From assembly GCA_946965045.2 (NCBI GenBank), contig OX337239.1, positions 2,170,001-2,234,000 of the forward strand: DNA of 64,000 nt, in the 5' to 3' direction. Below the pieces are notes generated by a model. The model saw only the letters and a list, made by a program, of their open reading frames with translations. It was not told where the DNA came from and searched no databases. Of this stretch, positions 23,536 to 54,220 are shown in pieces. The position numbers were made by a program, and so were the translations under genes. How positions within the stretch are numbered: position 1 is the stretch's first letter; each line of letters begins with the position of its first letter. This DNA is from Epithemia pelagica. Its lineage: Eukaryota; Protista; Bacillariophyta.

Positions 23536-23554
23536 GGTCAATACTACAAGTAAT

Positions 23555-34925: not shown

Positions 34926-36965
34926 ATGCCGACTCACGACCATCAAGAAATGCACTCTCTTCCGGTGCCGGAAGAGGTGAAGACGGACAGTATCATTACG
35001 GCCATTCAGCGACAAGAAGAAGAAGACAGTCGCGCGGCCTTCAAAAAGACTCGTCGCCGCTCGCTCATTCTCATGGGTGTGGCGGTGGTTGCCTTTGTGG
35101 CCGTAGTGGGTTTTATGGTGGCCTTTTTCACACAAGGCGAACGAACGGAAAAATCCGTCGCTCGTGCCACGGATCAAGGACGGCAAAGTGACGTGGATCC
35201 CTCGGCTTGGGATCGAGTGATTCAGTTACTCAAAACCTATACACCCGAGGAGCAGCTTCATACATCGGGAACACCTCAAAATGCGGCTGCCAATTGGATG
35301 ACTCGACAAGTCACGAACAATGGGTTGGATGTGCCTTCGTCGGCTTCCTACGATGATGCCTTTGGATTTGTTCAACGCTATGTCTTGGCAACCTTTTACA
35401 TTGCCTTGGACGGAGACAACTGGAAATACAAGTTGAGTTTCCTCGATGTGGAAAAGTCGGTTTGCGATTGGAATGAAAGGCTCAACGTCGTACCCGGTAC
35501 ATTTGCTATGGTACCAGCCAATGATGGAGAAGAAGAAACGGGAGGATACCAGGGAGACTTTAGCAAAGAAATACTTGCCACGATTGGTGTCAAGTGTAAT
35601 GACCTGAACGAGGTTGAGTACATTTATCTTCGTAAGTCAACTGACAAGCTTGTTACCATCACGTGTGTAAGGATTCTCTAACTTTTTTCTGCCTGCATGA
35701 CCTCTCCAGCGGACAACAACCTAAACGGTGAAATCCCTCCTGAAACTGGTCTTTTGGAAGCCATGAGACACTTTTCCGTCTACTCCAATTCCATTGGCGG
35801 AACCCTGCCCAGCTCTCTCATGGAATGGAACGATTTGGAAGTCATGATTGTTGAACACAATCAGTTGACCGGAAACTTCCCGCCCTACATTAGTCAATGG
35901 TCCAACTTGCTGACAATTTCATTTGCCAACAACAAGTTTAGGGGAGACTTGCCCTCGTTTGAAGCCCTTACTCAGCTCAAGTCGGTCGCTCTCAATGGCA
36001 ACAATTTTACCGGTCCCATTGATGTCTTTAACCAAAACACACAATTGGACATCTTGTTCCTTCAAGACAATGAATTCTCGGGTGAATTCAATCCAACTCT
36101 CTTGAGTAATGTGGAACTCCAGGTCATGGATTGTTCCAATAACAAGATTACAGGAGAGCTTACGTCCGATTGGTATTCCGTCCGCATCCTGGACGTGCAC
36201 AACAACTTACTTTCGGGAAACCTCCCTGAAGTTGACGATGATGCGGAAACCGTTTACTTGTCGTTGTATGGTAATGGCCTTACTGGTGAGATTCCTGAGA
36301 GCATCGGCAACTTGTACGATTTGTACCACTTGGATCTGTCAAACAATAAGTTTACTGGTGCCATCCCCGCGACCTTGAACATGTTGACTAGTTTGGAGTA
36401 CCTGTACCTCGGCAATAACAACTTTGATCCTCAAGTGTTTCCCTATTTGGGCGAATGCGGTGATTTACAAGAGCTCTCCCTCCGATCTTGTAATTTGATT
36501 AAAGCGATGCCTCATTATATTGGCCGTCTGTTGAGACAGTTAGTCTTGTTGGATGTCTCCAACAATAGACTGGAAGGAGAAATTCGGGAAAACTTGGCGC
36601 ACGCATCCGACATGCGTTTCTTGCTTTTGGCCAACAACAACTTTACAGGAAGTGTCCCGGAACAATTTGTTTACCTGGAAAGTCTTTCTGTCTTTACCGT
36701 CGATCACAATCCCTTGTTGAGTGGATCCATGGGAGATATTTGTGACCAGGATGTGGGACCTCAAGAATTGCAACATGTTTTGACCGATTGTTCGGTGGAC
36801 TGTCCTTGTTGCGATGTATGCTGCACTGAGCAGGACACGGGTTGTGGTTCCGAAACAGTGACACCCAATCTGGGAGGGGATGGCACCTACGAACGCGTAT
36901 CCTACATCTTCAATGAAGAATTGGTCTTTTCGATCGACAATACGGAAGAGGATGGCGATGACTAG
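34926..36965 (+). CDS. Leucine-rich-repeat membrane protein (2 exons; intron 35632-35709)
   Basis: N-terminal TM helix, the diatom-type QRYVLATFYIALDG.NW...C.W cap, and plant-like LRRs (LxxLxLxxNxLxGxIP). A GT-AG intron joins the frames. Confidence 0.88.
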
Positions 36966-37461: not shown

Positions 37462-38637
37462 TTAGCTATATTTTTGTTTCGAAGAGGTCGTATCGCCAAC
37501 AATATTGCTCTTGCCTCCATTGTCATTGCGGCTGTCCTTCGGAAGAGGTCGGTCTCGATGGACAACAATGGGGAGAGTTTCCGGTTCCAATTGGAGCGAG
37601 GGAAGCGACCCATCTTCGTCAAGGGGCCAACTGGGATTAAGACATGACGCCTTGTCGGATGGGCGATGAACCAAAGCTAACCTCAAAACGTTTACATAGG
37701 TATAACAGCTGAACACGACAAACAATCGACGATACCATACAAACTGAGATGCATGAGCAGCCATGGCCCGCCAATTCCAGCGCAATGGTTGCTGCAATCG
37801 AAACCACCATCTGGTGTCTAGAAAAGTATCAGGAGAAACTTGATTTGACTCTGTCCATGATGCTTTCGTGTCATCTCGCTTCCTTGAACGCGAGGACAAG
37901 AAGGAGGAAAAGTGTGGTACGGCTCCAAGCCACGTCAACATCAACAGAAACCAACAATAGAAGGGAAGATATTTGGCTACAACATTTGTTTCGGTTTCGA
38001 GGGTCCACACATGAGTTATGAAAATGGGCGGTAGACTCACTGTTTGGGCCGTGGATTTGTGGTAAGTAGTGTCGTCATTGTCTCTTCTACGTTGCTGGGT
38101 TTGCTTTTTATGTGAAGAAAACAAGTACTTGACTGCTGTACACGTATCGTGATGATTCACGTGTCCAGAAACACCCCCTTCATCAAAAGTGATGAACTGA
38201 ATTTCGATTGTCGTGTCCTTTTCTCTTGGATTCTGTCCAAACGACTTCTGCAGTCCTTGATGGAGGGCATACCGAATGCATTCCGCTACATGCGGTATCT
38301 TCCATGAGTTTTGGGGATGATCCAATGGCCACTGGTTGGCTACGCTACTATCTTCACCACGTACTAGGAGGAGTTTGTCAATCATGGGCAAGACAACAGT
38401 GTTCGTCCTACCATCACCAAAACACTGCCCTTCCAATTCCGTTTGTCGAGTGCTTCCCAATCCATCGTAATTTCCGGTTGTGAGACAGAGCAACCATATT
38501 TGAAAGGATTGATTCGGGGATCTTGTTTGTTGCCGCTTCTGCTGCTGCCACAATCCATACAAGGTAGGAAGAAAGAACAGACTTTCGTCATCGGGATGCG
38601 CCGTTACCAAAACATGGATTGTATTCCTGCATGTCAT
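37462..38637 (-). CDS. PIGL: N-acetylglucosaminyl-phosphatidylinositol de-N-acetylase (PIG-L family)
   Basis: TAHPDDESLFF, CLTTGNYDGLG..R..EL, ITFDEGGVSGHVNH and WFRRL-like WYRRLFVVFSCYTYVN motifs. Confidence 0.9.
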   Translation of the reverse strand: MTCRNTIHVLVTAHPDDESLFFLPTLYGLWQQQKRQQTRSPNQSFQIWLLCLTTGNYDGLGSTRQTELEGQCFGDGRTNTVVLPMIDKLLLVRGEDSSVANQWPLDHPQNSWKIPHVAECIRYALHQGLQKSFGQNPREKDTTIEIQFITFDEGGVSGHVNHHDTCTAVKYLFSSHKKQTQQRRRDNDDTTYHKSTAQTVSLPPIFITHVWTLETETNVVAKYLPFYCWFLLMLTWLGAVPHFSSFLSSRSRKRDDTKASWTESNQVSPDTFLDTRWWFRLQQPLRWNWRAMAAHASQFVWYRRLFVVFSCYTYVNVLRLALVHRPSDKASCLNPSWPLDEDGSLPSLQLEPETLPIVVHRDRPLPKDSRNDNGGKSNIVGDTTSSKQKYS

Positions 38638-39446: not shown

Positions 39447-42400
39447 ATGAAGCTGTCAGCTATTACATTTGTTCTGGCCGCTCTCGGGAACCATCATGTT
39501 GCATATGCTAGCAATCCAAAGAAGCATGGAGAGTATCGACAGCAAGATTTCTCCCAATCTCAGCGACAAGATATGGAGCAACTTCCAACGACGCAACTTG
39601 ATTCTTCCAGCGCACACGAGGGTGGCAACGAAGATGATGCCCAGTTTTGGGACCGCTTTCTCCAGGACTTCAATATCAACGGATACATAAAAAACAAACA
39701 GCCAGACCCCTGGAGCAAGAAAATGAGTCTAAGTTTCAGTCCAGCCCCTACCGATCCACCCACTGAGCCTCCTAGTAGAAATCCGAGTGAATCACCAAGC
39801 GAACGTCCAAGCGCAAGCCCAAGTGAACCACCGAGTGAGGCTCCATCAGAAGCTCCATCCAATCCACCCACGAACTTTCCCTGTGACGTTAATGTAACGA
39901 CGATTTGTGAGGACATTGATGGAACTCTTTGCGAAGACATCCCCCCGCCAAATGGAACCTGTTTTAGCGTTGCGAACCAAGCCATTGAAGTTCTCTCCTT
40001 CACGTACCTACCCGGCAATGACTGTTCCATGAGCCGTAATCAGCAATATGGAATAGCACAGTGCCAGGATCTTGCGGCGAATATTCCTGATGTCCCAGTC
40101 GAGCTCATCTGTGAGGATAATCTAGGAAACGGTATGAACGTTACTGAACAGAATATCACAGTGGATGGAGAAACGTTGTTTACAGTCACTCCGGTTGGTG
40201 GTGGGTCATTTCCTGAAGCTATCAACTGTACCATTAACAACGAAATCAATGGCCAGCCTCTTCAGTGGAACTTCATCAATACATCTGGCGCAGAACTGAA
40301 TCTGAAGGAAGCCTATGGTGCCCTTCAATTGGAATCGTGTGACGATCAAGTTTGTCTTCAAGAGGTATTTTTCCGAAGTTTCCTCGACAACATTGGAGGT
40401 GCCGATATGAACGTGACATTGGTCAACATTACCATTCCTGGACAAGATCCATATGACTTAGCCTTTTTGGTGGACAATCCGTTGGTCCCTGGAGAGCAGT
40501 TTACAGTTGTGGATATTGTGTTTTTGGATTACTGCGAGACGCAGAATATTTCGTATTGTGTCGATGTTGAGGCGGATCCACCTGTTGGAGCACCATGCTT
40601 TGATGAAGACAAGGTTGAGTTTCCAATTCTTGTTTCATGCTCTATTGAGCTCAATCTTACATGTGTCGAAGAGTCGAGTGGTTTGCCATGTGACGAAATC
40701 CCTGTAATTTCCAACCCTCAATGTGAATGTCCAGAAGGATGTTCTACCGAGTTGGAGTTTCGTTTCACGGGTAACGCTTGTGTTGACGATCCTACTTACG
40801 ACTGCACCTTTGATGGGACGATTAATCAGAGCGGTGGAACCGTTAGTGTGGCGACAGACCCGAACTTTGTAGCTGGCAGTGTTCTTTTCAACGAAATTGT
40901 TGGACCTGGCGGCAGGGTGTCCGTCTTCAACAACCTTCTTTGCATTGAAGATACATTGTACATCAATGTTTTTACAACAACGGGAAATCAGCGGATGACG
41001 CTACGAACAGATTGTACCAGTGGAGCAGGTCTCCCCTTGGCGCAACCTGTTGGGGCTCTAGACTTTGTTGGATTCACGTGTGATAACACTCTTGAAATTG
41101 ATTGCTTCTCGAATGTTGTCCTGGATACTTGTGCCATCAACCAAGGAACAGATGACCTTTTCTTGACGCTCTTCACAGTTGGAATCAGAGGCCAAGAAGC
41201 TTTCAATCTTTTGAATCCGCCTGTGTTGCTGGAACCTGGCGACGCAACGTGTGAGCAAGCCATCACAGAAATTTTCAAGTGTAACGACACTGAGTATGTA
41301 GTCGAGGCCATTGTTGAGGCTAACGATACCTCGGCTACGGGATGTGAGGATACCGCGCTACTTCCTTTTACTATTGCATCAGGTACTGTGGCTCCAAGTT
41401 CAAGTCCCAGTGACCAACCGACCGAAGTTCCATCTGAAGCTCCATCCATTCCACCCACGAACTTTCCCTGTGACGTTAATGTAACGACGATTTGTGAGGA
41501 CATTGATGGAACTCTTTGCGAAGACATCCCCCCGCCAAATGGAACCTGTTTTAGCGTTGCGAACCAAGCCATTGAAGTTCTCTCCTTCACGTACCTACCC
41601 GGCAATGACTGTTCCATGAGCCGTAATCAGCAATATGGAATAGCACAGTGCCAGGATCTTGCGGCGAATCTTCCTGATGTCCCAGTCGAGCTCATCTGTG
41701 AGGATAATCTAGGAAACGGTATGAACGTTACTGAACAGAATATCACAGTGGATGGAGAAACGTTGTTTACAGTCACTCCGGTTGGTGGTGGGTCATTTCC
41801 TGAAGCTATCAACTGTACCATTAACAACGAAATCAATGGCCAGCCTCTTCAGTGGAACTTCATCAATACATCTGGCGCAGAACTGAATCTGAAGGAAGCC
41901 TATGGTGCCCTTCAATTGGAATCGTGTGACGATCAAGTTTGTCTTCAAGAGGTATTTTTCCGAAGTTTCCTCGACAACATTGGAGGTGCCGATATGAACG
42001 TGACATTGGTCAACATTACCATTCCTGGACAAGATCCATATGACTTAGCCTTTTTGGTGGACAATCCGTTGGTCCCTGGAGAGCAGTTTACAGTTGTGGA
42101 TATTGTGTTTTTGGATTACTGCGAGACGCAGAATATTTCGTATTGTGTCGATGTTGAGGCGGATCCACCTGTTGGAGCACCATGCTTTGATGAAGACAAG
42201 GTTGAGTTTCCAATTCTTGTTTCATGCTCTATTGAGCTCAATCTTACATGTGTCGAAGAGTCGAGTGGTTTGCCATGTGACGAAATCCCTGTAATTTCCA
42301 ACCCTCAATGTGAATGTCCAGAAGGATGTTCTACCGAGTTGGAGTTTCGTTTCACGGGTAACGCTTGTGTTGACGATCCTACTTACGACTGCAGTACACA

Positions 42401-45400
42401 GGGGACGATTGATACGGATGGTGGAACTGTTGTTGTGGCAACAGATCCCACTTTTCAGAATGTTCTTTTCAACCAAGCTGTCACGACAGGTACTCCGATA
42501 TCCGTTGCCAACCCCAGCTGTGTTCCTGATGACTTATATATCAATGTTACGTTTACCGCGGGAAGTCAAAGCATTGTATTGCGTACAGCATGTTCCAGTG
42601 GAGCAGGTCTCCCCTTGGCGCAACCTGTTGGGGCTCTAGACTTTGTTGGATTCACGTGTGATAACACTCTTGAAATTGATTGCTTCTCGAATGTTGTCCT
42701 GGATACTTGTGCCATCAACCAAGGAACAGATGACCTTTTCTTGACGCTCTTCACAGTTGGAATCAGAGGCCAAGAAGTTTTCAATCTTTTGAATCCGCCT
42801 TTTTTGCTGGAACCCGGCGACGCAACGTGTGAGCAAGCCATCACAGAAATTTTCAAGTGTAACGACACTGAGTATGTAGTCGAGGCCATTGTTGAGGCTA
42901 ACGATACCTCGGCTACGGGATGTGAGGACACCGCGCTACTTCCTTTTACTATTGCATCAGGTACTGTGGCTCCAAGTTCAAGTCCCAGTGACCAACCGAC
43001 CGAAGTTCCATCTGAAACTCCATCTGATCAACCAAGCGAACCGCCCTCTGATGTTCCGTCTTTATCTCCCAGTTTAAGTCCAAGTGATCCACCGAGCGAG
43101 GTTCCGTCTGTTTCTCCATCCAATCAACCAAGTGATCCTCCGAGTGAGAGTCCATCGGATGCTCCAACGGCTCCTCCTACCGGGTTTTGTCTTGTTGACG
43201 TTGACATCGTTTGCGATGTAACAAGTGATGGAACAATTACCTGTGCAGGACTTACACCTCCTTCCACCGCACGTTGTTCCAATGGAGAGAGAATCGATAC
43301 AGTGTCATTCAAGTATCTTGGGGCATCTGGCTCGACTTGTCAAGACAGTCGAAATCAACAAGAGGCGAATTGTGAGTCTGTCTGCGTTGATTTTGGACTT
43401 CTTGTGGATACACCTGTCGATATTGAATGCTTTGACTTGATTGAGACCCCTTTGATTGTTGAACCTACATCGGTTCTTCCTGGAGAGATTTTCACCGTCA
43501 CTGAGAATCCGTCGAGTGGAGGACCACCTTTGATGCAAAAGATCAATTGTACAATTTCCTCAGGTGGAACAATTCTGCAGTACAATGTGATGGACGTGTC
43601 GGGTGACGTTGAGTTGGACCTACAAGAACAATACGGTGGTTTGGAACTTGAGAAATGTGATGGACTGACATGCTTCCAAATTGTCGACCTCGTGACTACA
43701 ATTAACAATACTGGGGCGATTGAAATGAACATTACAGTTGCGGATGAAACACTGCTTGGCGTCACCACAAGCGTTCTCGCTAATCTTACTGGTCCATGGG
43801 GTGATAATCCGTATCTCCTACAACCTGGAGAAAGTGCCGAGCTTCAAAGAGATGATTTGGTTGTTGATCTTTGTGAAACAGGAGACTTTGTGTATCAGCT
43901 CGACGCCGAGGCTGACCCACCTAACGGAGTGGAGTGCAATGACACAGATTTGATCACGCTTTCTTTCGCACCACAGTGTATTGTCGACACCAACCTCACA
44001 TGTACCTACCTCGAGACTGGCGGTGACTGTAACTCCATCCCAGATTTCAACTCCCCGGACTGTGATTGTGATGGAAGCTGTGCAACGGAAATGTTGTTCC
44101 GATATGTGCCACGCACATGTGACCAGTCTCCACCAGACAGTGCATTTGCGGTCGAATGTACACAGTTGTTGGACCAAATGCCAACCAATCCAAATATTTT
44201 GGTTGTCTTCAACGCAACGTTGGCTTATTACGAAGGCACCAATGTCACCTCAGAAACAAATATTTTCTTACGTGCACCGGATGGCGGTTGCATTGCCGAG
44301 CCTGTGAACGTGTTGATCCAAAACGAGATCGGAGTTCCGGCACAGGTGTTCACACTGACACCAGGCTGCAGCAACAACGATGAACGGTCAATTGGATTGA
44401 CAGATAGCTACGCGTCTTTTGATTTTTTCGGTTTCACCTGCCAAAACAGTCCTCCTCAAAACTGTTTCACGGACATTGAGTTTGAGCAATGCGCCATCAA
44501 CAATGGTGTGATCAATCTCACTCTGACCCAGCTCGATTTGACGTTTGAAGGTTCCGTGAATAACCTTCTCGATGATCCAACTGTAGTGCGTGATCTCGAA
44601 CCAGGACAAGCCACCTGTGCAAGTCCAGTCGGCTATGAGATTTATCTGTGTGACGGAGGAACATACACGGCCAATGGGTTCGTGGAAGCGAACGATACAT
44701 CAGGTAGCACCTGTTTTGGAGATGCTGAACTTACCAATATCGATCCCAATCGTCCGACCTTCCCACCAACGCTCTTCCCAACAGAAGTTCCCAGTCCCAC
44801 TCCGTCCATGGCTCCGTCAATGGTTCCCTCTACGTCGCCCACTGAGAATTGTGACTTGGTCATTGACTTGAACTGTACAGGATGTGATATCAACGTGACG
44901 AATCTTCCTAATTGTACCGATCGGCCGTTTTTGGTTGGAATGCTTTTCCGAGGAGGCGACTGTTCCGAGAACAACTTTACACAACCAATTGACCGAGTGA
45001 CATGTGGCGATTTCCCTCAGAATGGAGAAGTTCCCAAACTTGGAAGTAACGAAACCGTATTCATCAGAGCCAACGCAGATCCGAAAGACGAGATCGGCGG
45101 CACTGGAGGAGATGACGAAACATTGCTTTTTGAGGGCCTGGTGACTGAGGGAAGTGTGTACTTTCTTTACGATAATGGTGAAGATATGCCTGCGGACACA
45201 CAGATCCGAATTTATCCAGCAGAGGGTCCACAAAACCCTTCAACCATTTTACAAGATGTTCGCTTCCATGCGTCTTGTTCACAACCTCTTTTGTTGAAGA
45301 ATGTGTTTGGATCTCATCAGTTGGTCCAGTTTGAGAATGTTCCGCAAGGCAATGTGTCTTGCTTTGCAAGTATCACTTCCGACTACAGAATTACAATTCC

Positions 45401-45761
45401 CATCAATGGCCTTCCGACGGGAGATGATGTCCTGGAGATTACTCGTGCAACGATTCGTACCAACTACACAAATCCTGCCTTTACCTTTCTTACTTGTTTG
45501 GAGGGTCAAGTGATTTGTTCGGAAGAGGTGGCACAGAATATTAGCAATCCGACGTGCAACACAAGTACATTGGAAGTTGAGTTTGAAACAACATTGAGCC
45601 TGAACGAGGCACAAGGCTATTCCCAAGAGATTAATATTTTCGCGCGAGGATTGACAACGGGACAACGATGCCGAGGAAGAGGTGTTGAAGAGTTCTGTGC
45701 TCCGTTGAACGATCCTGTTTGTCAAGGACAAGACGGCGGTGGCGGAGGTTCACCTCTCTAA
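39447..45761 (+). CDS. Giant secreted Cys-rich modular glycoprotein A (2104 aa), putative adhesin/extracellular-matrix protein
   Basis: Signal peptide, Pro/Ser/Thr linkers (PSxxPS), tandem ~529-aa Cys-rich modules and many NxS/T sequons. No TM or evident GPI tail. Confidence 0.85.
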   Translation: MKLSAITFVLAALGNHHVAYASNPKKHGEYRQQDFSQSQRQDMEQLPTTQLDSSSAHEGGNEDDAQFWDRFLQDFNINGYIKNKQPDPWSKKMSLSFSPAPTDPPTEPPSRNPSESPSERPSASPSEPPSEAPSEAPSNPPTNFPCDVNVTTICEDIDGTLCEDIPPPNGTCFSVANQAIEVLSFTYLPGNDCSMSRNQQYGIAQCQDLAANIPDVPVELICEDNLGNGMNVTEQNITVDGETLFTVTPVGGGSFPEAINCTINNEINGQPLQWNFINTSGAELNLKEAYGALQLESCDDQVCLQEVFFRSFLDNIGGADMNVTLVNITIPGQDPYDLAFLVDNPLVPGEQFTVVDIVFLDYCETQNISYCVDVEADPPVGAPCFDEDKVEFPILVSCSIELNLTCVEESSGLPCDEIPVISNPQCECPEGCSTELEFRFTGNACVDDPTYDCTFDGTINQSGGTVSVATDPNFVAGSVLFNEIVGPGGRVSVFNNLLCIEDTLYINVFTTTGNQRMTLRTDCTSGAGLPLAQPVGALDFVGFTCDNTLEIDCFSNVVLDTCAINQGTDDLFLTLFTVGIRGQEAFNLLNPPVLLEPGDATCEQAITEIFKCNDTEYVVEAIVEANDTSATGCEDTALLPFTIASGTVAPSSSPSDQPTEVPSEAPSIPPTNFPCDVNVTTICEDIDGTLCEDIPPPNGTCFSVANQAIEVLSFTYLPGNDCSMSRNQQYGIAQCQDLAANLPDVPVELICEDNLGNGMNVTEQNITVDGETLFTVTPVGGGSFPEAINCTINNEINGQPLQWNFINTSGAELNLKEAYGALQLESCDDQVCLQEVFFRSFLDNIGGADMNVTLVNITIPGQDPYDLAFLVDNPLVPGEQFTVVDIVFLDYCETQNISYCVDVEADPPVGAPCFDEDKVEFPILVSCSIELNLTCVEESSGLPCDEIPVISNPQCECPEGCSTELEFRFTGNACVDDPTYDCSTQGTIDTDGGTVVVATDPTFQNVLFNQAVTTGTPISVANPSCVPDDLYINVTFTAGSQSIVLRTACSSGAGLPLAQPVGALDFVGFTCDNTLEIDCFSNVVLDTCAINQGTDDLFLTLFTVGIRGQEVFNLLNPPFLLEPGDATCEQAITEIFKCNDTEYVVEAIVEANDTSATGCEDTALLPFTIASGTVAPSSSPSDQPTEVPSETPSDQPSEPPSDVPSLSPSLSPSDPPSEVPSVSPSNQPSDPPSESPSDAPTAPPTGFCLVDVDIVCDVTSDGTITCAGLTPPSTARCSNGERIDTVSFKYLGASGSTCQDSRNQQEANCESVCVDFGLLVDTPVDIECFDLIETPLIVEPTSVLPGEIFTVTENPSSGGPPLMQKINCTISSGGTILQYNVMDVSGDVELDLQEQYGGLELEKCDGLTCFQIVDLVTTINNTGAIEMNITVADETLLGVTTSVLANLTGPWGDNPYLLQPGESAELQRDDLVVDLCETGDFVYQLDAEADPPNGVECNDTDLITLSFAPQCIVDTNLTCTYLETGGDCNSIPDFNSPDCDCDGSCATEMLFRYVPRTCDQSPPDSAFAVECTQLLDQMPTNPNILVVFNATLAYYEGTNVTSETNIFLRAPDGGCIAEPVNVLIQNEIGVPAQVFTLTPGCSNNDERSIGLTDSYASFDFFGFTCQNSPPQNCFTDIEFEQCAINNGVINLTLTQLDLTFEGSVNNLLDDPTVVRDLEPGQATCASPVGYEIYLCDGGTYTANGFVEANDTSGSTCFGDAELTNIDPNRPTFPPTLFPTEVPSPTPSMAPSMVPSTSPTENCDLVIDLNCTGCDINVTNLPNCTDRPFLVGMLFRGGDCSENNFTQPIDRVTCGDFPQNGEVPKLGSNETVFIRANADPKDEIGGTGGDDETLLFEGLVTEGSVYFLYDNGEDMPADTQIRIYPAEGPQNPSTILQDVRFHASCSQPLLLKNVFGSHQLVQFENVPQGNVSCFASITSDYRITIPINGLPTGDDVLEITRATIRTNYTNPAFTFLTCLEGQVICSEEVAQNISNPTCNTSTLEVEFETTLSLNEAQGYSQEINIFARGLTTGQRCRGRGVEEFCAPLNDPVCQGQDGGGGGSPL
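39843..43018 (+). repeat. Two tandem ~1.58-kb intragenic modules in gene A
   Basis: Offset 1587 before and 1578 after a divergent window. The shadow ORFs of the two copies are identical or nearly so. Confidence 0.95.
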
Positions 45762-47284
45762 AGGAAAAACCACTCTCGCTCGAAAGATGTGTCCTAGTCA
45801 TCACTTCATTATTATATATATAATTATTAATAGTAATATATTTCCATTTGGTTTATCGAACTGATGACGTGCAAGGTCTTGATAACGCATGTGAGCAAGA
45901 GACAATTGGTCTTAGTCTATTGTTAGGGCAGTCGACGCTGAAAGAAAGAACAACAGACATTACGATCGATTGAGGAGGGGCATCGGAGAGACTTACAAAA
46001 ATGAACGAGGTCGTCTTGTTGACCAGAGCTCATCATGTCTGGAAAACCCCTTACCTCGGAAACAAATCATTTTCGCGATGACAGAAATGCCGCTTCTTCC
46101 GTTTTTGTTACAAGGATCGATTTCAACAGTAGATGACTCTTCGGTGATACCACTCCTGTTTCATCATGGAGTTGGAAATCTTGATGTGCCAGCGTCGAAT
46201 CGACTTTTCCCTTCTGGGTCACGAGGTAAGGATGAAAGAACAACGGCCGCAATCGATTGCCCGAGTGCCTTAGATTTCAAAGCTTGTCGTACTTGAATGA
46301 TGATCCATAAAGCAAATCCATTACAACAAACACCCGAAAGTGCGAGGTGATCGAGTCGCTGGATTTATCGTAGTATGGATACTCTCTAGAGATGGCTTTG
46401 TGAAGCTTTGTTCTCAGCTACTCCTTTGTTGTCGTTTTTCTCTGTCTCAAGCTGAATGGAGCAAGGTTGGATTCATGACGGCGTGACCCACATCTCCGAG
46501 CTCTGTTGGTTCGAACACCATGACATCCAAGACCTTGCCGACTTACTGACAATTTGAAACAAACCAATTTCGCACGAAACAGGACAAAAGATATGGAACG
46601 GTTGTCTCCTCTCGTCATGAATCAAGCGTCGACAAGCTAAGCGTCATGGAATCGACTAGAGGTATGTTCGGGTTGGTCAAAATTGTGAGCACCCGGAACC
46701 TGGAACCCGGAATCGTCCCCATCTCGAAGAGGAGGCAGACAGACACATATAATCTATTTAATATCTGGATGGCGAGGGAGGTATTTAGAAAATTTAGTCT
46801 TGGTAATTGAGAAATGGACGTTGGCCGTCCCTCCCAGGACTAAATTGGACCTCAGTCAGAACCCTGGTCTTCTCTAAATTCTTCTAACGGCTAGCTAAAT
46901 TGCTAAGAAATAGAGACCGAATATCGCTCAGTATCCGTTCGAAAGTGGTACTTAGGAGAATTGGCACGCCCGGCGGGAAGATCCTTTTCTCATCCGCATC
47001 ACCTGGCACATAGTATTCCAAATCATCTTTCGATCCAGTTCCGTCTCTCACATTCCATACTTCCACACATCCATACAGCTGAATCCCTTACAAAAACGGA
47101 TTGTGGCCAATCCCTTTCACAAAATCAACTGTACTCAGTGAGGAGGAAGACCAGCAAAGAGAATCCAAGCTAGAAGAGCACTCGCTATAAACCTTTGGAC
47201 TGAACCGTGAGCTCGTCGTTCCTCGGTCTAAGCCGTAAGCAGCTTGCGACTCAACAATACGGCTGAAGCTAGTACTCCGGAAAA

Positions 47285-50200
47285 ATGAGGGTGACAGTCG
47301 TTGTTGTTGGTTGGTTGCTGACGAATGCGTTCGCAAGCGCCATCGAATCAAGCCATAGTGATGGACCGGAAGGACATGGACCAGAACAACCTGGGGAAGA
47401 CGATGAAAAGTTCTGGGAGCGATACCTTGGTACTTTTGATTTCAAGCAATTCAAGTCTCCCTGGGAAAAGAAAATGAGTCTCAGTATGAGCGAAGCCCCG
47501 ACCACGCCTCCCAGCGATCGTCCGAGTAACAACCCCAGCAGTCTTCCAACCACTTCGCCAAGTACATCTCCGAGTGAAACACCGACGGATGAGCCAAGTC
47601 AATCGCCATCCACTTCACCAAGCGCGTCACCTTCGACTTCACCAAGTGATTCACCTAGTGAAACTCCTACCGAAGTCCCAAGCAACTCTCCATCTGCCTC
47701 ACCAAGTGAATCTCCGACAAACACGCCCAGTGAAAGTCCCAGTTCATCACCAAGTGTGCCTCCAACCCTTACTCCAAGTCTATCCCCCAGTGATCAGCCG
47801 TCTAGTCGGCCTACGAACTTTGCTTGTGGCGTCAATGTTACAACGATTTGTGAGGACTTTGAAGAAACCCGTTGTGAAGACATTCCACCACCCGATGGAA
47901 CCTGTTTCAGTGTTGGAAACCAAGCTATTGAAGTACTCTCCTTCACCTATCTACCGGGCAACGACTGTTCAACAAGTCGCAACCAGCAGTACGAAACATC
48001 ACAATGCGAGGATGTAGGTACGTTGGTGGATGAACCTGTCGACTTGATGTGTGTTGACGTAGAAAACACTGTCCTGATGACGGTGACGGAACAGAATATC
48101 ACGGTTGACGGCGAAGTGTTGTTCACTGTGATGCCCATGGGAACGGGACCTAGAGAGTTTCCGGATGCCATTAACTGTACCATTGTCTTGGCGTCGACCG
48201 GGGAGCCCCTTCAATGGAACGTCATTGATACATCCGGTAGATCAGAGTTGAATCTCAAGGAGACATACGGCGCGATGCAATTGGAGTCTTGTGATGATCA
48301 AGTTTGTATCCAAGAAGTCTTTTTTCGAAGCTTCCTTGACAATATTGGAAGTGCCAACATGAACGTTACACTGGTCAACATTACTATTCCTGGACAAGAT
48401 CCATACGACTTGGCCTTTTTGGTGGACAATCCGTTGGCCCCAGGAGAACAGTTTACAGTTGTGGATATTATCTTTTTGGATTATTGTGAGACGCAGAATA
48501 TTTCTTATTGTGTCGATGTTCAGGCGGATCCTCCTGTGGGCGAACCATGCTTTGACGAAGACAAGGTTGAGTTCCCTATCCTTGTTGAATGTGCCATTGA
48601 GCTTAACCTTACATGTGTCGAAGAATCAAGTGGACTGGCATGTGACCAAATCCCTCCTATTTCCAATCCTCAGTGTGAATGTCGAGAAGGATGTTCCACA
48701 GAGCTACAGTTTCGTTTTACGGCCGCATCATGCGGAGATGATCGTGAAGGTTTCACATGCGAACAAGACGGAACAATGCATGAGGCCGGAGGATCCCTAC
48801 TTGTGTTTATTGATGCCGATGCACAAACAGTCCTATACAATGAATCTATTGTCCCAGATACTCCAATTGTAATCTTCGACTCTATGGAGTGTCTCCCCGA
48901 TATGCTGTATCTCCTTATATTCACTGACACGGGACGGCAGCGCATTGCCCTCAATACTGGATGTCAGACTGGTAGTGGTATTATTCTTGCAGAGGCGGTT
49001 GGTGCGTTGAATTTCGTTGGATATGCATGCGACAACAGTCCGACGGTCAAATGTTATTCCAATGTGGCTGTTGATACATGTGCCATCAACCAAGGAACGG
49101 ACGACCTTTTCTTGACTCTCTTTACTGTTGGAATTGTGGGGCAGTCGACGTTTAACTTGCTTGGAGAAGAGCCCGTTTTGTTGCAACCTGGAGAAGCCAC
49201 CTGTGATGATGTATCCACGGAAATTTACAAATGCAATGAAACGTTATATACTGTGGTTGCTCGGGTTGAAGCTAACGAAACATCGAACATCGGATGTGAG
49301 GACGAGGAGTCAATTCAGTTCTTTATATCTGAAGACACCCTGGTCCCGAGTTCGTCCCCAAGTGAACCCCCGACGTCGGTTCCAAGTGATGAACCCAGTC
49401 TTTCCCCAAGTGAACCTCCTTCATTGTCCCCCAGTGACCCTCCTTCACTGTCCCCCAGTACCTCTCCAAGTGAACCTCCCACCCTTTTGCCGAGTTCACC
49501 ACCAAGTGACGTTCCCTCAACTCCACCCACAAATTTGCCTTGTGACGTCAACGTAACAGTTATTTGTGAAGACATTTTGGGAAGGAACTGTGAGGACATT
49601 CCTTCGCCAAATGGAACGTGTTTCACTAACTCAAATCGTGCTATCGAGGTTCTTTCATTCACTTATGTGCCATTCGGTGATTGCTCTACAAGTCGTAACC
49701 AGCAATATGACACTTCGGAATGTCAAGATCTAGCCACATTGGTGGATGAACCGGTGAACATGGTTTGTGTTGGGGCTGGCGACACGCCCATGGTTGTTAC
49801 CGAGCAGAATATCACCGTAGACGGAGAAACGCTTTTCACGGTCTCACGTCCAGACAATAGTCCGTTCCCGTCGTCTATCAATTGTACGATCGAACTGGAG
49901 TCGACCGGGGAGCCCCTTCAATGGAACGTCATTGGTACGACACCATCTACAGAGCTCAATCTCAAGGAGACGTATGGAGCCATGCAATTGGAGTCATGCG
50001 ATGACCAGGTTTGTCTCCAACAGGTATTCTTCCGCAATTTCCTTGATAATATTGGAGGTGCCGACATGAATGTGACACTGGTCAACATCACCATACCTGG
50101 ACAAGATCCATATGACTTAGCCTTTTTGGTGGACAATCCGTTGGCCCCTGGAGAACAGTTTACAGTTGTGGATATCATCTTTTTGGATTACTGCGAGACG

Positions 50201-53200
50201 CATAACATTTCGTATTGTGTCGATGTTGAGGCGGATCCACCTGTTGGAGCACCATGCTTTGATGAAGACAAGGTCGAGTTTTCCATTGAACCACCCTGTG
50301 GTATTGAGGTCAATCTTACATGTATCGAGGCGGAAACTGGAATTCGTTGCAACCAGATTCCTTCCATAATTAACCCTCAGTGTGAATGCATCGGCCCCGG
50401 TGACTGCTTGCAAGTCATAGAGTTCCGATACACAGCATCACCCTGCCAACCCCCACAAGACCAGGAAGGCTTTACATGCTCGCCACAAGGTGGACCATTG
50501 ACTGAATCCGGAGGGACACTCATTGTTTCGTCTAACCCAGATGGATCCGATGTGATCTTTGAGTCTTTAATTGAACTTGACCGCAGTGTTAGGGTGCAGA
50601 ACGGTACATGTCTCCCCGACACCCTGTACATGGAAGTCATTACGAACGATGGAAGCCAAAATATAGCGCTGACACCTGGTTGCTCAACTGGATCTGGAAT
50701 TGATCTGGCCCTGTCAGCTGGGTCGTTGGATTTTGTTGCATACAGCTGTGCTCAAGGCGACGAGAGAGACTGCTTCGCCGATATTCTCCTCGATACTTGT
50801 GCAATTAACCAGGGGCCAATAAACCTGACGTTGACGAGCTTCACGGTTGGCCTCGAAGGGGAACCACAAACCAGTCTTCTTGATCCGAATGTTGAGATTA
50901 TTTTGCAACCAGGAGATGAATACTGTGGTAATGGCACATCAGAAGTCTTCAAATGCAACGGAACAACATACACGGCAGTCTCTGTTGTTACGGCAAACGA
51001 CACTTCGGCAATTGGTTGCGAGGACGAAGAGATCCTTCAATTCTTTGTTCCTCCTCCGGGAACGCAGGTTCCTAGCTCATCTCCGAGTGATCCTCCAAGC
51101 GACATTCCTAGTACCAGTCCAAGTGAACCACCGACCACTACTCCCTCTTTAGCTCCTAGTACCAATCCCAGTGAATCTCCGAGTGAAGTGCCAACGACAA
51201 GTCCAAGTGATTCACCGAGTGAGTCTCCGAGTGAATCTCCGAGTGAAGTGCCAACGACAAGTCCTTCCCGCTCTCCGTCAACCTCTCCGAGTGAGTCCCC
51301 AAGCGAGTCACCGAGTGCACCTCCCAGCGACCAACCCTCAAGAACGCCGACAACGACGCCCAGTAGCTCCCCAAGCGAACCACCGACATCGAATCCAAGC
51401 GAACCACCAACTGAACTCCCGAGTGACGTTCCAAGTGAACCCCCGAGTCGTTCCCCGTCCACTTCTCCAAGTGAAAACCCCAGTGCTCCTCCCAGCAATT
51501 CTCCAAGTGAAAACCCCAGTGCTCCTCCCAGCAATACACCAAGCACTACCCCCACCGATGTTCCGTCGTTGTCACCAAGTGATCCTCCGAGTCAGACTCC
51601 ATCGGATGTTCCATCGTCTCCTCCTACCGGGGTTTGTCTTGTTGACGTTGACATCGTTTGCGATGTAACAAGTGATGGAACAATTACCTGTGCAGGACTT
51701 ACACCTCCTTCCACCGCACGTTGTTCCAATGGAGAGAGAATCGATACAGTGTCATTCAAGTATCTTGGGGCATCTGGCTCGACTTGTCAAGACAGTCGAA
51801 ATCAACAAGAGGCGGATTGTGAGTCTGTCTGCGTTGATTTTGGACTTCTTGTGGATACACCTGTCGATATTGAATGCTTTGACTTGATTGAGACCCCTTT
51901 GTTTGTTGAACCAACAACGGTCCTTCCTGGAGAGATCTTTACCGTCACTGGAGACCCGTCGGGTGGAGGACCACCTTTGATGCAAAAGATCAATTGTACA
52001 ATTTCATCCGGGGGAAACATTCTGCAGTACAATGTGATGGACGTGTCGGGTAACGTTGAGTTGGATCTACAAGAACAATACGGTGGTTTGGAACTTGAGA
52101 AATGCGATGGACTGACGTGCTTCCAAACTGTCGACCTCGTGACTACAATTAACAATACTGGGGCGATTGAAATGAACATTACAGTTGCGGATGAAACACT
52201 GCTTGGCGTCACCACAAGCGTTCTCGCTAATCTTACTGGTCCATGGGGTGATAATCCGTATCTCCTACAACCTGGAGAAAGTGCCGAGCTTCAAAGAGAT
52301 GATTTGGTCGTTGATCTTTGTGAAACAGGAGACTTTGTGTATCAGCTCGACGCCGAGGCCGACCCTCCTAACGGAGTGGAGTGCAATGACACAGATTTGA
52401 TCACGCTTTCTTTCGCACCACAGTGTATTGTCGACACCAACCTTACATGTACCTACCTCGAGACTGGCGGTGACTGTAACTCCATCCCAGATTTCAACTC
52501 CCCGGACTGTGATTGTGATGGAAGCTGTGCAACGGAAATGTTGTTCCGATATGTTCCACGCACCTGTGACCAGTCTCCACCAGACAGTGCATTTGCGGTC
52601 GAATGTACACAGTTGTTGGACCAAATGCCGACCAATCCAAATATTTTGGTTGTCTTCGACGCAACGACGGCTTATTACGAAGGCACCAACGTCACCTCAG
52701 AAACAAACATTGTCTTACGTGCACCGGATGGCGGTTGCATTGCCGAGCCTGTGAACGTGTTGATCCAGAACGAGATCGGAGTTCCGGCACAGGTGTTCAC
52801 ACTGACACCAGGCTGCAGTAACAACGATGAACGGTCAATTGGGTTGACAGACAGCTACGCGTCTTTTGACTTTTTCGGTTTCACCTGTCAAAACAGTCCT
52901 CCTCAAAACTGTTTCACGGACATTGAGTTTGAGCAATGCGCCATCAACAATGGTGTCATCAATCTCACTCTGACCCAGCTCGATTTGACGTTTGAAGGTT
53001 CCGTGAATAATCTTCTCGATGATCCAACTGTAGTACGGGATCTCGAATCAGGACAAGCAACCTGTGCAAGTCCAGTCGGCTATGAGATTTATCTGTGTGA
53101 CGGAGGAACATACACGGCCAATGCGTTCGTAGAAGCGAACGATACATCAGGTAGCACCTGTTTTGGAGATGCTGAACTTACCAATATCGATCCCAATCGT

Positions 53201-54220
53201 CCGACCTTCCCACCAACGCTCTTCCCAACAGAAGTTCCCAGCCCCACTCCGTCCATGGCTCCGTCAATGGTTCCCTCTACGTCGCCCACTGAGAATTGTG
53301 ACTTGGTCATTGACTTGAACTGTACAGGATGTGATATCAACGTGACGAATCTTCCTAATTGTACCGATCGACCGTTTTTGGTTGGAATGCTTTTCCGAGG
53401 AGGAGACTGTTCCGAGAACAACTTTACACAACCAATTGACCGAGTGACATGTGGCGATTTCCCTCAGAATGGAGAGGTTCCCAAACTCGGAAGTAATGAA
53501 ACCGTATTCATCAGAGCTAACGCAGATCCGAAAGACGAGATCGGCGGCACTGGAGGAGATGGCGAAACATTGCTTTTTGAGGGCCTGGTGACTGAGGGAA
53601 GTGTGTACTTTCTTTACGATAATGGTGAAGATATGCCTGCGGACACACAGATCCGAATTTATCCAGCAGAGGGTCCACAAAACCCTTCAACCATTCTACA
53701 AGATGTTCGCTTCCATGCGTCTTGTTCACAACCTCTTTTGTTGAAGAATGTGTTTGGATCTCATCAGTTGGTCCAGTTTGAGAATGTTCCGCAAGGCAAT
53801 GTGTCTTGCTTTGCAAGTATCACTTCCGACTACAGAATTACAATTCCCATCAATGGCCTTCCGACGGGAGATGATGTCCTGGAGATTACTCGTGCAACGA
53901 TTCGTACCAACTACACAAATCCTGCCTTTACCTTTCTTACTTGTTTGGAGGGTCAAGTGATTTGTTCGGAAGAGGTGGCACAGAATATTAGCAATCCGAC
54001 GTGCAACACAAGTACATTGGAAGTTGAGTTTGAAACAACATTGAGCCTGAACGAGGCACAAGGCTATTCCCAAGAGATTAATATTTTCGCGCGAGGATTG
54101 ACAACGGGACAACGATGCCGAGGAAGAGGTGTTGAAGAGTTCTGTGCTCCGTTGAACGATCCTGTTTGTCAAGGACAAGGCAGTGGTGGGGGAGGAGGCG
54201 GAGGAGGTTCACCCCTCTAA
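47285..54220 (+). CDS. Giant secreted Cys-rich modular glycoprotein B (2311 aa), tandem paralog of gene A
   Basis: Same architecture as gene A with longer PS-rich linkers. The 3' ~2.6 kb is almost identical to gene A. Confidence 0.85.
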   Translation: MRVTVVVVGWLLTNAFASAIESSHSDGPEGHGPEQPGEDDEKFWERYLGTFDFKQFKSPWEKKMSLSMSEAPTTPPSDRPSNNPSSLPTTSPSTSPSETPTDEPSQSPSTSPSASPSTSPSDSPSETPTEVPSNSPSASPSESPTNTPSESPSSSPSVPPTLTPSLSPSDQPSSRPTNFACGVNVTTICEDFEETRCEDIPPPDGTCFSVGNQAIEVLSFTYLPGNDCSTSRNQQYETSQCEDVGTLVDEPVDLMCVDVENTVLMTVTEQNITVDGEVLFTVMPMGTGPREFPDAINCTIVLASTGEPLQWNVIDTSGRSELNLKETYGAMQLESCDDQVCIQEVFFRSFLDNIGSANMNVTLVNITIPGQDPYDLAFLVDNPLAPGEQFTVVDIIFLDYCETQNISYCVDVQADPPVGEPCFDEDKVEFPILVECAIELNLTCVEESSGLACDQIPPISNPQCECREGCSTELQFRFTAASCGDDREGFTCEQDGTMHEAGGSLLVFIDADAQTVLYNESIVPDTPIVIFDSMECLPDMLYLLIFTDTGRQRIALNTGCQTGSGIILAEAVGALNFVGYACDNSPTVKCYSNVAVDTCAINQGTDDLFLTLFTVGIVGQSTFNLLGEEPVLLQPGEATCDDVSTEIYKCNETLYTVVARVEANETSNIGCEDEESIQFFISEDTLVPSSSPSEPPTSVPSDEPSLSPSEPPSLSPSDPPSLSPSTSPSEPPTLLPSSPPSDVPSTPPTNLPCDVNVTVICEDILGRNCEDIPSPNGTCFTNSNRAIEVLSFTYVPFGDCSTSRNQQYDTSECQDLATLVDEPVNMVCVGAGDTPMVVTEQNITVDGETLFTVSRPDNSPFPSSINCTIELESTGEPLQWNVIGTTPSTELNLKETYGAMQLESCDDQVCLQQVFFRNFLDNIGGADMNVTLVNITIPGQDPYDLAFLVDNPLAPGEQFTVVDIIFLDYCETHNISYCVDVEADPPVGAPCFDEDKVEFSIEPPCGIEVNLTCIEAETGIRCNQIPSIINPQCECIGPGDCLQVIEFRYTASPCQPPQDQEGFTCSPQGGPLTESGGTLIVSSNPDGSDVIFESLIELDRSVRVQNGTCLPDTLYMEVITNDGSQNIALTPGCSTGSGIDLALSAGSLDFVAYSCAQGDERDCFADILLDTCAINQGPINLTLTSFTVGLEGEPQTSLLDPNVEIILQPGDEYCGNGTSEVFKCNGTTYTAVSVVTANDTSAIGCEDEEILQFFVPPPGTQVPSSSPSDPPSDIPSTSPSEPPTTTPSLAPSTNPSESPSEVPTTSPSDSPSESPSESPSEVPTTSPSRSPSTSPSESPSESPSAPPSDQPSRTPTTTPSSSPSEPPTSNPSEPPTELPSDVPSEPPSRSPSTSPSENPSAPPSNSPSENPSAPPSNTPSTTPTDVPSLSPSDPPSQTPSDVPSSPPTGVCLVDVDIVCDVTSDGTITCAGLTPPSTARCSNGERIDTVSFKYLGASGSTCQDSRNQQEADCESVCVDFGLLVDTPVDIECFDLIETPLFVEPTTVLPGEIFTVTGDPSGGGPPLMQKINCTISSGGNILQYNVMDVSGNVELDLQEQYGGLELEKCDGLTCFQTVDLVTTINNTGAIEMNITVADETLLGVTTSVLANLTGPWGDNPYLLQPGESAELQRDDLVVDLCETGDFVYQLDAEADPPNGVECNDTDLITLSFAPQCIVDTNLTCTYLETGGDCNSIPDFNSPDCDCDGSCATEMLFRYVPRTCDQSPPDSAFAVECTQLLDQMPTNPNILVVFDATTAYYEGTNVTSETNIVLRAPDGGCIAEPVNVLIQNEIGVPAQVFTLTPGCSNNDERSIGLTDSYASFDFFGFTCQNSPPQNCFTDIEFEQCAINNGVINLTLTQLDLTFEGSVNNLLDDPTVVRDLESGQATCASPVGYEIYLCDGGTYTANAFVEANDTSGSTCFGDAELTNIDPNRPTFPPTLFPTEVPSPTPSMAPSMVPSTSPTENCDLVIDLNCTGCDINVTNLPNCTDRPFLVGMLFRGGDCSENNFTQPIDRVTCGDFPQNGEVPKLGSNETVFIRANADPKDEIGGTGGDGETLLFEGLVTEGSVYFLYDNGEDMPADTQIRIYPAEGPQNPSTILQDVRFHASCSQPLLLKNVFGSHQLVQFENVPQGNVSCFASITSDYRITIPINGLPTGDDVLEITRATIRTNYTNPAFTFLTCLEGQVICSEEVAQNISNPTCNTSTLEVEFETTLSLNEAQGYSQEINIFARGLTTGQRCRGRGVEEFCAPLNDPVCQGQGSGGGGGGGGSPL
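51618..54180 (+). repeat. Near-identical copy of 43171-45733 (shared C-terminal block of genes A and B)
   Basis: Constant offset 8447 (e.g. shadow ORFs 43225/51672, 45279/53726) with only scattered substitutions. Confidence 0.95.

Follow-up and report, generated by a model that had tools for sequence, protein, structure and literature searches.

The closest described systems to the locus reported here are found among prokaryotic and diatom surface proteins. The fibrillar adhesins of bacteria and archaea are very long proteins composed of tandem immunoglobulin (Ig)-like beta-sandwiches, which resist force and proteolysis (PMC12617251), and those with stalks of CARDB or CLIPPER domains (DUF11, DUF7507) represent the closest architectural analogue. 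As the closest working analogue among diatoms, CaFAP1 of Craspedostauros australis is a mucin-like, glycosylated and frustule-associated protein of 1158 amino acids that forms a coat on the cell surface and, once shed, is found on trails; its homology was described as 'only across PTS rich regions' (PTS, Pro/Ser/Thr), and the protein was termed species-specific (bioRxiv 10.1101/2023.03.06.531300). Homologues proper are known from the genome paper of Seminavis robusta, in which Sro4_g003610 and ten paralogues, belonging to family HOM02SEM000907, are listed among the genes with a high pennate signature (PMC7335047). In this study, we analysed a stretch of 64,000 nucleotides (positions 2,170,001 to 2,234,000 of contig OX337239.1, assembly GCA_946965045.2; hereafter the window) from the diatom Epithemia pelagica, for which a chromosome-level assembly of 60 Mbp has been published (PMC12377750). 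The subject is a tandem pair of very large genes in this window, gene 1 and gene 2, with the products p1 and p2.

We read this locus as a tandem pair of paralogues from a family of giant extracellular glycoproteins of pennate diatoms, with a structural or matrix role, and assign to this reading a probability of roughly 0.6. From sequence features we infer secretion, glycosylation, an extracellular location and a structural or adhesive role of p1 and p2, for which a cell-surface or matrix glycoprotein is probably the best description.

Results

Architecture of the two giant proteins

As an earlier note on this DNA had described, the two genes are adjacent intronless open reading frames (ORFs), coding for 2104 (p1) and 2311 (p2) amino acids. 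Both were found to be open throughout, with frames uninterrupted over 6.3 and 6.9 kb, and an upstream in-frame stop precedes the first ATG by 18 codons in p1 and by 4 codons in p2 (for coordinates see Table 1). The spacer of 1.5 kb between the two carries no ORF of at least 150 amino acids. The host contig is a diatom contig of 3.3 Mb with eukaryotic genes around the pair, and the genome assembly (60.5 Mb in 23 contigs, chromosome-scale) includes more than 10 intact silicon-transporter genes.

A single architecture is common to p1 and p2, in which a leader is followed by the motif FW[ED]R[FY]L, PTS linkers, three modules (M1, M2 and M3), a terminal unit (T) and a Gly tail. The Cys-rich modules, previously estimated at about 530 amino acids, are present but measure 502-525 amino acids. 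Modules of the M1/M2 type share 60-93% identity with each other and approximately 37% with M3, in agreement with the earlier view of the third module as the more distant one. Every module consists of a unit of about 255 amino acids that is duplicated internally, the a- and b-units being alignable end to end, and the terminal half-module (306-310 amino acids) is made of one such unit, so that each protein contains 7 units (three two-unit modules plus T). The linkers, 24, 71 and 28 amino acids long in p1 and 64, 188 and 28 in p2, are composed of Pro, Ser and Thr to 66-74% and account for about 12-19% of the protein. Both proteins are acidic (D+E 14.7%, K+R about 3%), and all 101 Cys of each are located in the folded parts, with 13-16 Cys per unit and only 0-3 Lys per unit of about 250 amino acids (one unit lacks Lys altogether). 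The N-glycosylation sequons are as dense as had been claimed, numbering 45 in p1 and 41 in p2 against expectations of 18.4+-3.7 and 16.8+-3.7 from composition-preserving shuffles of the folded parts. The number of Cys is odd per module (13 + 16 = 29), as it is per protein, so that at least one Cys per module stays unpaired within the module and inter-unit or intermolecular disulfides could be formed.

Each leader contains one basic residue and a hydrophobic core of 10-15 residues, and the residues at the probable cleavage site are small; as judged by eye, and by the like N-terminal pattern kept in relatives, the N-termini of p1 and p2 are putative signal peptides. After this leader, the motif FW[ED]R[FY]L was found in p1, p2 and 14 of the relatives fetched, a total of 16 sequences, among which are both proteins of E. 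clementina, and it may represent a pro-peptide, a processing signal or a sorting signal. In p1 the motif is followed by a PW.KKMSLS element ahead of the first PTS linker, and many relatives carry a run of Lys (KK to KKKKK) between the motif and that linker. The claim that a membrane anchor is missing was borne out: no 19-residue window of transmembrane-like hydrophobicity was detected beyond the leader in p1 or p2, the single further window of at least 1.6 (value 1.61) being inside a folded unit of p2, and neither a transmembrane nor a glycosylphosphatidylinositol-type anchor was recognised at the C-termini, of which the last 25 residues are hydrophilic in both proteins. The Gly-rich tail consists of five or eight Gly and then SPL. 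Some relatives (P0170, P0172, P0140, P0078 and P0106 in alignment A3) end in a Gly/Lys-rich tail with G and K runs and a short basic end, which may be a wall-binding or silica-binding element. Plastid targeting of p2, considered for the A-F-A-S-A stretch behind its signal peptide (ASAFAP-like), was rejected, because this stretch is missing in p1 and in the orthologues and a sequon-rich protein with 101 Cys is not of plastid type.

The repeat unit and its predicted fold

On Pfam search the repeat proved to be a catalogued one, DUF7467 (PF24269), and not an orphan fold, but the family is as yet uncharacterised; p1 and p2 are new members of it. There are 7 DUF7467 matches per protein, with total scores of 220.6 bits (E 7.3e-66) for p1 and 232.9 bits (E 1.1e-69) for p2, and single pieces score up to 60.8 bits against a gathering score of 27 bits; in a six-frame search, 10 of the 14 DUF7467 stretches were recovered individually. 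Together with the internal duplication, these matches agree with the earlier description of two related subdomains per module and about seven repeats per protein. Within the unit, DUF7467 corresponds to the first ~120 residues behind a short Cys-rich lead-in, and the remaining ~95 residues of each unit matched no Pfam family. Since the second half of the unit could not be related to the DUF7467 half by hhalign, the proteins contain two domain types and not a single domain in 14 copies.

The AlphaFold2 model of one unit, based on 34 sequences, is all-beta with two consecutive beta-sandwiches (predicted local distance difference test score, pLDDT, 91.4; predicted template-modelling score, pTM, 0.80), and the terminal unit is again modelled as two beta-sandwiches (pLDDT 83.4). 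The structural neighbours of the unit, as found by Foldseek and by a Foldseek-independent aligner, are generic Ig-like sandwiches in a flat list with Z of 8-10, including ApaG (10.0), CARDB (3idu, 8.2) and the CLIPPER domain of a fibrillar adhesin (9ifr, 8.2), together with the barrels of factor XIII/transglutaminase (TG2), the macroglobulin domains of C3 and alpha-2-macroglobulin, Gram-positive pilins, RbmA and domain III of HAP2. Local Foldseek matches at a probability of 1.0 were with ApaG-type domains, and in one metagenomic relative (P0004) weak matches to CARDB and CLIPPER_2 were obtained for the segments that separate its DUF7467 domains. From these models we conclude that the unit is predicted to combine DUF7467, as an ApaG-like sandwich, with an Ig sandwich of CARDB/CLIPPER/macroglobulin type, a modelled fold class that is common among surface stalks. 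Look-ups in the ESM Atlas with the whole module and with the terminal DUF7467 domain gave no usable match, and a search of PDB sequences with the unit profile and with whole p1 gave only one match of linker composition and weak ones at chance level.

Relatives and taxonomic distribution

A profile of six modules was searched against 1.84 billion representative proteins and retrieved relatives in 557 clusters (50% identity) with a cut-off of E<=1e-3, of which 151 pass E<=1e-30; most contain 1-3 units and a few up to 8; a word-based protein search returned 2 and 6 relatives. Of the relatives looked up, those with a name are KAL7567993 and KAL7568000 of E. clementina and Sro4_g003610 of S. robusta, the other 27 being derived from metagenome or SRA assemblies. 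The two E. clementina genes are located on one contig and on the same strand, 46 kb apart, and one of them is intronless. Their products have the same module order as p1 and p2, with a module of the M1/M2 type, one of the M3 type and a terminal unit that shares 64-66% identity with T. In a module tree, the M1/M2-type and the M3-type clades each include modules of both E. clementina and the window (Shimodaira-Hasegawa-like approximate likelihood-ratio test, SH-aLRT, 100 for both), indicating that the module types are older than the split of E. clementina and E. pelagica, while the four M1/M2 modules of the window group together. Sro4_g003610 (P0041 in our set) matches the module profile in 4 stretches (E 5.1e-66) with five DUF7467 domains, and its terminal-unit match is weaker than in the E. 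clementina proteins. In many relatives the terminal unit stands at or near the C-terminus.

The distribution, which the earlier note had proposed to compare between raphid, araphid and centric diatoms, is given in the S. robusta genome paper. Among the species of the MMETSP transcriptome collection, Sro4_g003610 has matches in 11 of the 32 pennates and in none of the 56 centrics, with a pennate signature of 5.14 that was confirmed by genome data (PMC7335047). The family is thus pennate-only in this profiling, but it is commoner in araphid species (8 of 14) than in raphid species (3 of 18), the raphid signature being -1.72 (PMC7335047 Source Data 6). By habitat, matches were recorded for 5 of the 8 benthic species and for 5 of the 73 planktonic ones, with a benthic signature of 3.02, and HOM02SEM000907 itself comprises 21 genes and is expanded, tandem-enriched, of age 'Diatom' and automatically labelled 'external encapsulating structure' (PMC7335047). 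The family appears to be a pennate innovation independent of the raphe. In the literature searched, we found no main-text mention of DUF7467 or of Sro4_g003610.

On the prokaryotic side, DUF7467 was not found in 14 control prokaryote genomes, and its absence from prokaryotes rests on these genomes plus the contexts of relatives inspected: three metagenomic or SRA contigs are eukaryotic by their genes for an inositol-polyphosphate kinase, a pepsin-type protease and an LTR (long terminal repeat) retroelement. The label 'archaellum component FlaF' given by JGI to relative P0100 was rejected, as its contig carries the eukaryotic inositol-polyphosphate kinase gene, and Pfam did not return the 'Hemolysin-type calcium-binding repeat' with which the Seminavis protein is annotated at NCBI.

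Probable gene conversion and a spared divergent cassette

A tract that begins shortly before M3 and takes in the rest of the coding sequence is nearly identical in the two genes (Table 1), its flanks being at the background level of ~60% identity. Synonymous (dS) and non-synonymous (dN) divergence between p1 and p2 is low in M3 (dS 0.099, dN 0.014) and in T (dS 0.035, dN 0.001) when compared with M1, in which dS is saturated at 1.88 (dN 0.23), indicating that the 3' halves were homogenised recently, most simply by gene conversion. With dN/dS of ~0.14 for M3, ~0.04 for T and ~0.12 for M1, all parts are under purifying selection, and the two are working genes, not decaying copies.

Inside p1, M1 and M2 form a tandem repeat of 1587 bp with dS of 0.005-0.03 outside a cassette of ~230 bp. 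The old cassette within homogenised repeats that had been suspected is real: M1 and M2 share 58% amino acid identity inside it and 99% outside, and its dS of 0.85 and dN of 0.41 give dN/dS of ~0.48. No third copy of the cassette was found elsewhere in the genome. Across all M1/M2-type modules of the two species, conservation is lowest in the corresponding stretch, where identity is 24-46% as compared with 49-74% in the remainder of the module, and the cassette is an old divergence spared by conversion, not the product of recent hypermutation.

Comparison with known surface and adhesion proteins

The earlier note did not recognise p1 and p2 as frustulins, pleuralins, silaffins or cingulins, and neither the frustulin and pleuralin marks examined nor Lys clusters of silaffin type were detected in either protein. 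Frustulins contain acidic Cys-rich (ACR) domains with a C-E/D-G-D-C-D/E hexapeptide; by motif search, neither C[ED]GDC[DE] nor CxGDC occurs in p1 or p2. For the pleuralins, of which a PSCD domain structure is present in the PDB, no PSCD-type match was obtained among PDB sequences with the unit profile or whole p1. For silaffins we looked for Lys-rich KxxK or pentalysine clusters together with Ser-rich regions, and for cingulins for W/Y-rich domains; Lys makes up 0.9% and Trp 0.2-0.3% of p1 and p2, in which KxxK occurs 0 and 1 times.

Gel-forming mucins resemble p1 and p2 solely in the alternation of PTS linkers and Cys-rich parts, since neither the VWD-C8-TIL families nor a C-terminal cystine knot family was matched by Pfam. 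The Trailins and the GDPH/VWD trail proteins of raphid diatoms are, like p1 and p2, secreted, modular and PTS-containing. Their signatures are however missing from p1 and p2, in which CAA (pAdhesive_15, PF20597) gave no match at E<=1, VWD gave no match, and the GDPH tetrapeptide, searched by motif only, does not occur; in addition, the distribution of the family is not raphid-specific. CaFAP1, which we compared by its description, likewise starts with a signal peptide, lacks an anchor and alternates between PTS-rich and Cys-rich regions, but with homology limited to PTS regions it is an analogue of p1 and p2 and, as far as this description shows, not a relative.

With fibrillar adhesins, p1 and p2 have in common the stalk of tandem Ig-like beta-sandwiches, the AlphaFold2 models giving two sandwiches per unit. 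Unlike those adhesins they are eukaryotic, carry mucin-like linkers between the units, lack an LPXTG, OmpA or type IX secretion system (T9SS) anchor, and have no recognised head. A stalk locked by isopeptide bonds is marked by a Lys-Asn/Asp triad in each domain plus a cell-wall anchor; the 0-3 Lys per unit and the absence of LPXTG do not agree with such a stalk, and the 13-16 Cys per unit suggest that disulfides, not isopeptide bonds, stabilise the units of p1 and p2. The HOM02SEM000907 and E. clementina proteins are homologous to p1 and p2, sharing DUF7467 units, PTS linkers, a signal peptide and tandem or linked genes; particular to p1 and p2 are the copy number (three modules plus T), the homogenised 3' half and the retained divergent cassette.

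Other related loci and neighbouring genes

Elsewhere in the genome (G000 in Table 1), a third giant secreted protein of 2864 amino acids is encoded, with a signal peptide, one DUF7467, PT repeats equivalent to ~1.5-2 kb (PF04886, 300 bits) and a C-terminal VWA domain, an architecture which indicates that DUF7467 also serves as a single head on a mucin-like stalk. Two small paralogues (~420-470 amino acids) consist of a PST linker and one module like the terminal unit, 43-46% identical to T; in the one on C2 a hydrophobic segment of 24 residues directly follows the first ATG and could be a signal anchor or a long signal peptide. The CAA (pAdhesive_15) domain is represented by three loci, in all of which the match contains stop codons in the six-frame read, and these could be introns or signs of broken copies.

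Within the window, the upstream neighbours of the pair encode a leucine-rich-repeat protein (LRR_1, 92 bits) and a protein with a weak match to PIG-L (N-acetylglucosaminyl-phosphatidylinositol de-N-acetylase-like; 26.8 bits, just below the cut-off); a functional tie of either to p1 and p2 is not evident. A further large ORF of 2097 amino acids, with low-complexity acidic, His, Asn and Ser runs and no Pfam match, looks intracellular and unrelated to the pair.

Table 1. Positions of the genes, protein parts and other loci described in the text (window positions unless a contig of G000 or a locus L is given).
Feature	Position	Strand	Remarks
Gene 1 (p1)	39447..45761	+	open coding sequence; ~223 kDa before glycosylation, pI 4.05
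p1 signal-peptide-like N-terminus	39447..39509	+	amino acids 1-21; small-residue A-x-A site
Motif FW[ED]R[FY]L	p1 39645..39662; p2 47411-47428	+	p1 amino acids 67-72; acidic stretch behind the signal peptide
p1 module M1	39876..41390	+	two units; DUF7467 at 39984-40340
Divergent cassette in M1	40809..41036	+	core of second DUF7467 domain, amino acids 455-530
p1 module M2	41463..42968	+	two units; DUF7467 at 41571-41927 and 42333-42650; tandem copy of M1
Divergent cassette in M2	42396..42614	+	amino acids 984-1056
p1 module M3	43182..44756	+	distant module type; DUF7467 at 43293-43655
p1 terminal unit T	44841..45758	+	best DUF7467 match 44940-45332, then second beta-sandwich and Gly tail
Intergenic spacer	45762..47284		flanks of the two genes not conserved
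Gene 2 (p2)	47285..54220	+	open coding sequence; ~244 kDa, pI 4.05
p2 module M1	47819..49342	+	
p2 module M2	49535..51064	+	
p2 module M3	51629..53203	+	
p2 terminal unit T	53288..54217	+	eight-Gly tail
Homogenised tract	p1 43146..45761 vs p2 51593-54220	+	~97% nucleotide identity
Leucine-rich-repeat gene	35697-36965	+	
PIG-L-like gene	37462-38637	-	
Low-complexity ORF	17296-23589	-	
Gene for 2864-aa protein	G000:C1:1213610-1222204	-	L001:1614-9998 is most of it
Small paralogue	L004:2381-3781 = G000:C2:6238021-6238782	-	
Small paralogue	L003:2111-3379 = G000:C13:236266-237018	-	
CAA locus	G000:C3:1080980-1081810	-	
CAA locus	G000:C3:1097809-1098639	-	
CAA locus	G000:C13:839356-840060	-	

Discussion

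The earlier note had proposed that p1 and p2 are beads-on-a-string polymers of an adhesive mucilage, a gliding trail or an organic wall layer. The extracellular part of this proposal is supported by the secreted-type, anchorless, acidic and sequon-enriched character of both proteins, and the araphid-rich, benthic-enriched and pennate-only distribution fits a surface or matrix role. Several observations weigh against a structural or matrix role as the final answer. Because its structural neighbours are generic, the fold does not on its own point to a function, and the second domain of the unit in p1 and p2 is without a sequence match to CARDB or CLIPPER; no adhesive or carbohydrate-binding head domain was recognised in either protein, and their Gly tail is without the Lys-rich character seen in some relatives. 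In S. robusta, HOM02SEM000907 is not enriched among the genes up-regulated in any condition tested (PMC7335047), so nothing there links the family to adhesion, silica or sex. Adhesion proper is graded lower than a matrix role, as a tentative suggestion that we consider less probable than its opposite.

Under the matrix reading, p1 and p2 would enter the secretory pathway, the sandwich domains would be N-glycosylated, and the PTS linkers would be the presumed sites of O-glycosylation. The approximately 14 rigid sandwich domains would then form rod segments joined by extended glycosylated linkers, and the product would be a long, protease-resistant and strongly acidic filament in or on an external organic layer or mucilage, with a function comparable to that of a mucin or of the stalks in bacterial fibrillar adhesins, but stabilised by disulfide rather than isopeptide bonds. 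The terminal unit is conserved and also occurs alone behind an N-terminal hydrophobic segment in a small paralogue; of all parts of the proteins it would be the one most likely to interact or dock. The core of the second DUF7467 domain evolves fast in M1/M2-type modules and is a candidate for a variable specificity surface.

Such a variable surface would also be expected if p1 and p2 were recognition molecules, acting in mating or gamete pairing, in self/non-self discrimination or in the binding of bacteria or of epiphyte substrates, with a conserved scaffold and a variable DUF7467 core. The low conservation of that core (24-46% against 49-74% identity), the retention of two old cassette variants (dS 0.85) inside p1 flanks homogenised to dS 0.005-0.03, and the expansion of the family in tandem arrays of S. 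robusta are in line with recognition. We nevertheless regard it as unlikely, as dN/dS of the cassette is below 1, the cassette spans nearly the whole domain core and not loops, and the family shows no enrichment among S. robusta genes induced by reproduction or by bacteria. Still less probable is a role as adhesive trail or traction proteins secreted through the raphe for gliding. The resemblance to known trail proteins as large, modular, PTS-containing secreted proteins (bioRxiv 10.1101/2023.03.06.531300) and a host of raphid type, as concluded from the nearest relatives being in Epithemia, speak for this role, but the occurrence of the Seminavis member in 8 of 14 araphid as against 3 of 18 raphid species weakens it, p1 and p2 carry no CAA, GDPH or VWD, separate CAA-domain loci exist in the genome, and linkers of ~12-19% compare poorly with the PTS repeats that make up ~50-70% of CaTrailin4 and Ca5609, the two largest trail proteins.

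A bacterial source, whether fibrillar adhesin genes acquired by horizontal transfer or plain contamination, comes to mind because the tandem beta-sandwich arrangement recalls the CARDB/CLIPPER stalks (PMC12617251) and because CAA, another adhesive domain of diatoms, is of bacterial origin (bioRxiv 10.1101/2023.03.06.531300). It is very improbable in view of the 3.3-Mb diatom contig with eukaryotic neighbours, the eukaryotic nature of all inspected contigs of relatives, the failure to find DUF7467 in the 14 control prokaryote genomes, and the scarcity of Lys and lack of LPXTG, which leave no room for isopeptide chemistry. Repeats of 1.6 kb and 2.6 kb that are near-identical are, on the other hand, prone to collapse or duplication by an assembler, and a non-functional or mis-assembled locus was weighed for this reason; open frames of 6.3 and 6.9 kb with dN/dS of 0.04-0.14, the identical module order in E. 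clementina with one intronless gene, and the chromosome-scale assembly in 23 contigs make this equally hard to believe. The preferred reading thus remains that of two tandem paralogues of structural or matrix glycoproteins.

As a bolder extension of the matrix reading, which we offer only as a possibility with the odds against it, the family might be the pennate eukaryotic counterpart of fibrillar adhesins, with mucin linkers carrying disulfide-locked rods of DUF7467 and Ig-like domains, docking to the cell surface by the conserved C-terminal unit, and old cassette alleles, retained within converted repeats, as a specificity surface towards substrate, partner cells or bacteria. If this were true, pennates would have in this family a surface toolkit that defines their lineage and that centrics lack.

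Apart from its products, the locus is a clean case of repeat homogenisation by gene conversion that spared one old divergent cassette. Knowledge of the surface, mucilage and adhesion proteins of diatoms is limited to a few species, and most of these proteins are species-specific; in contrast, this family is large, pennate-restricted and benthic-enriched according to published profiling, and tandem-expanded. As the domain is catalogued already, the pair does not represent a new kind of system; it is a target for diatom cell-surface biology. What is new here is a confident fold model together with a defined unit architecture for the DUF7467 family, which is a tractable candidate for a conserved surface or matrix component of pennate diatoms.

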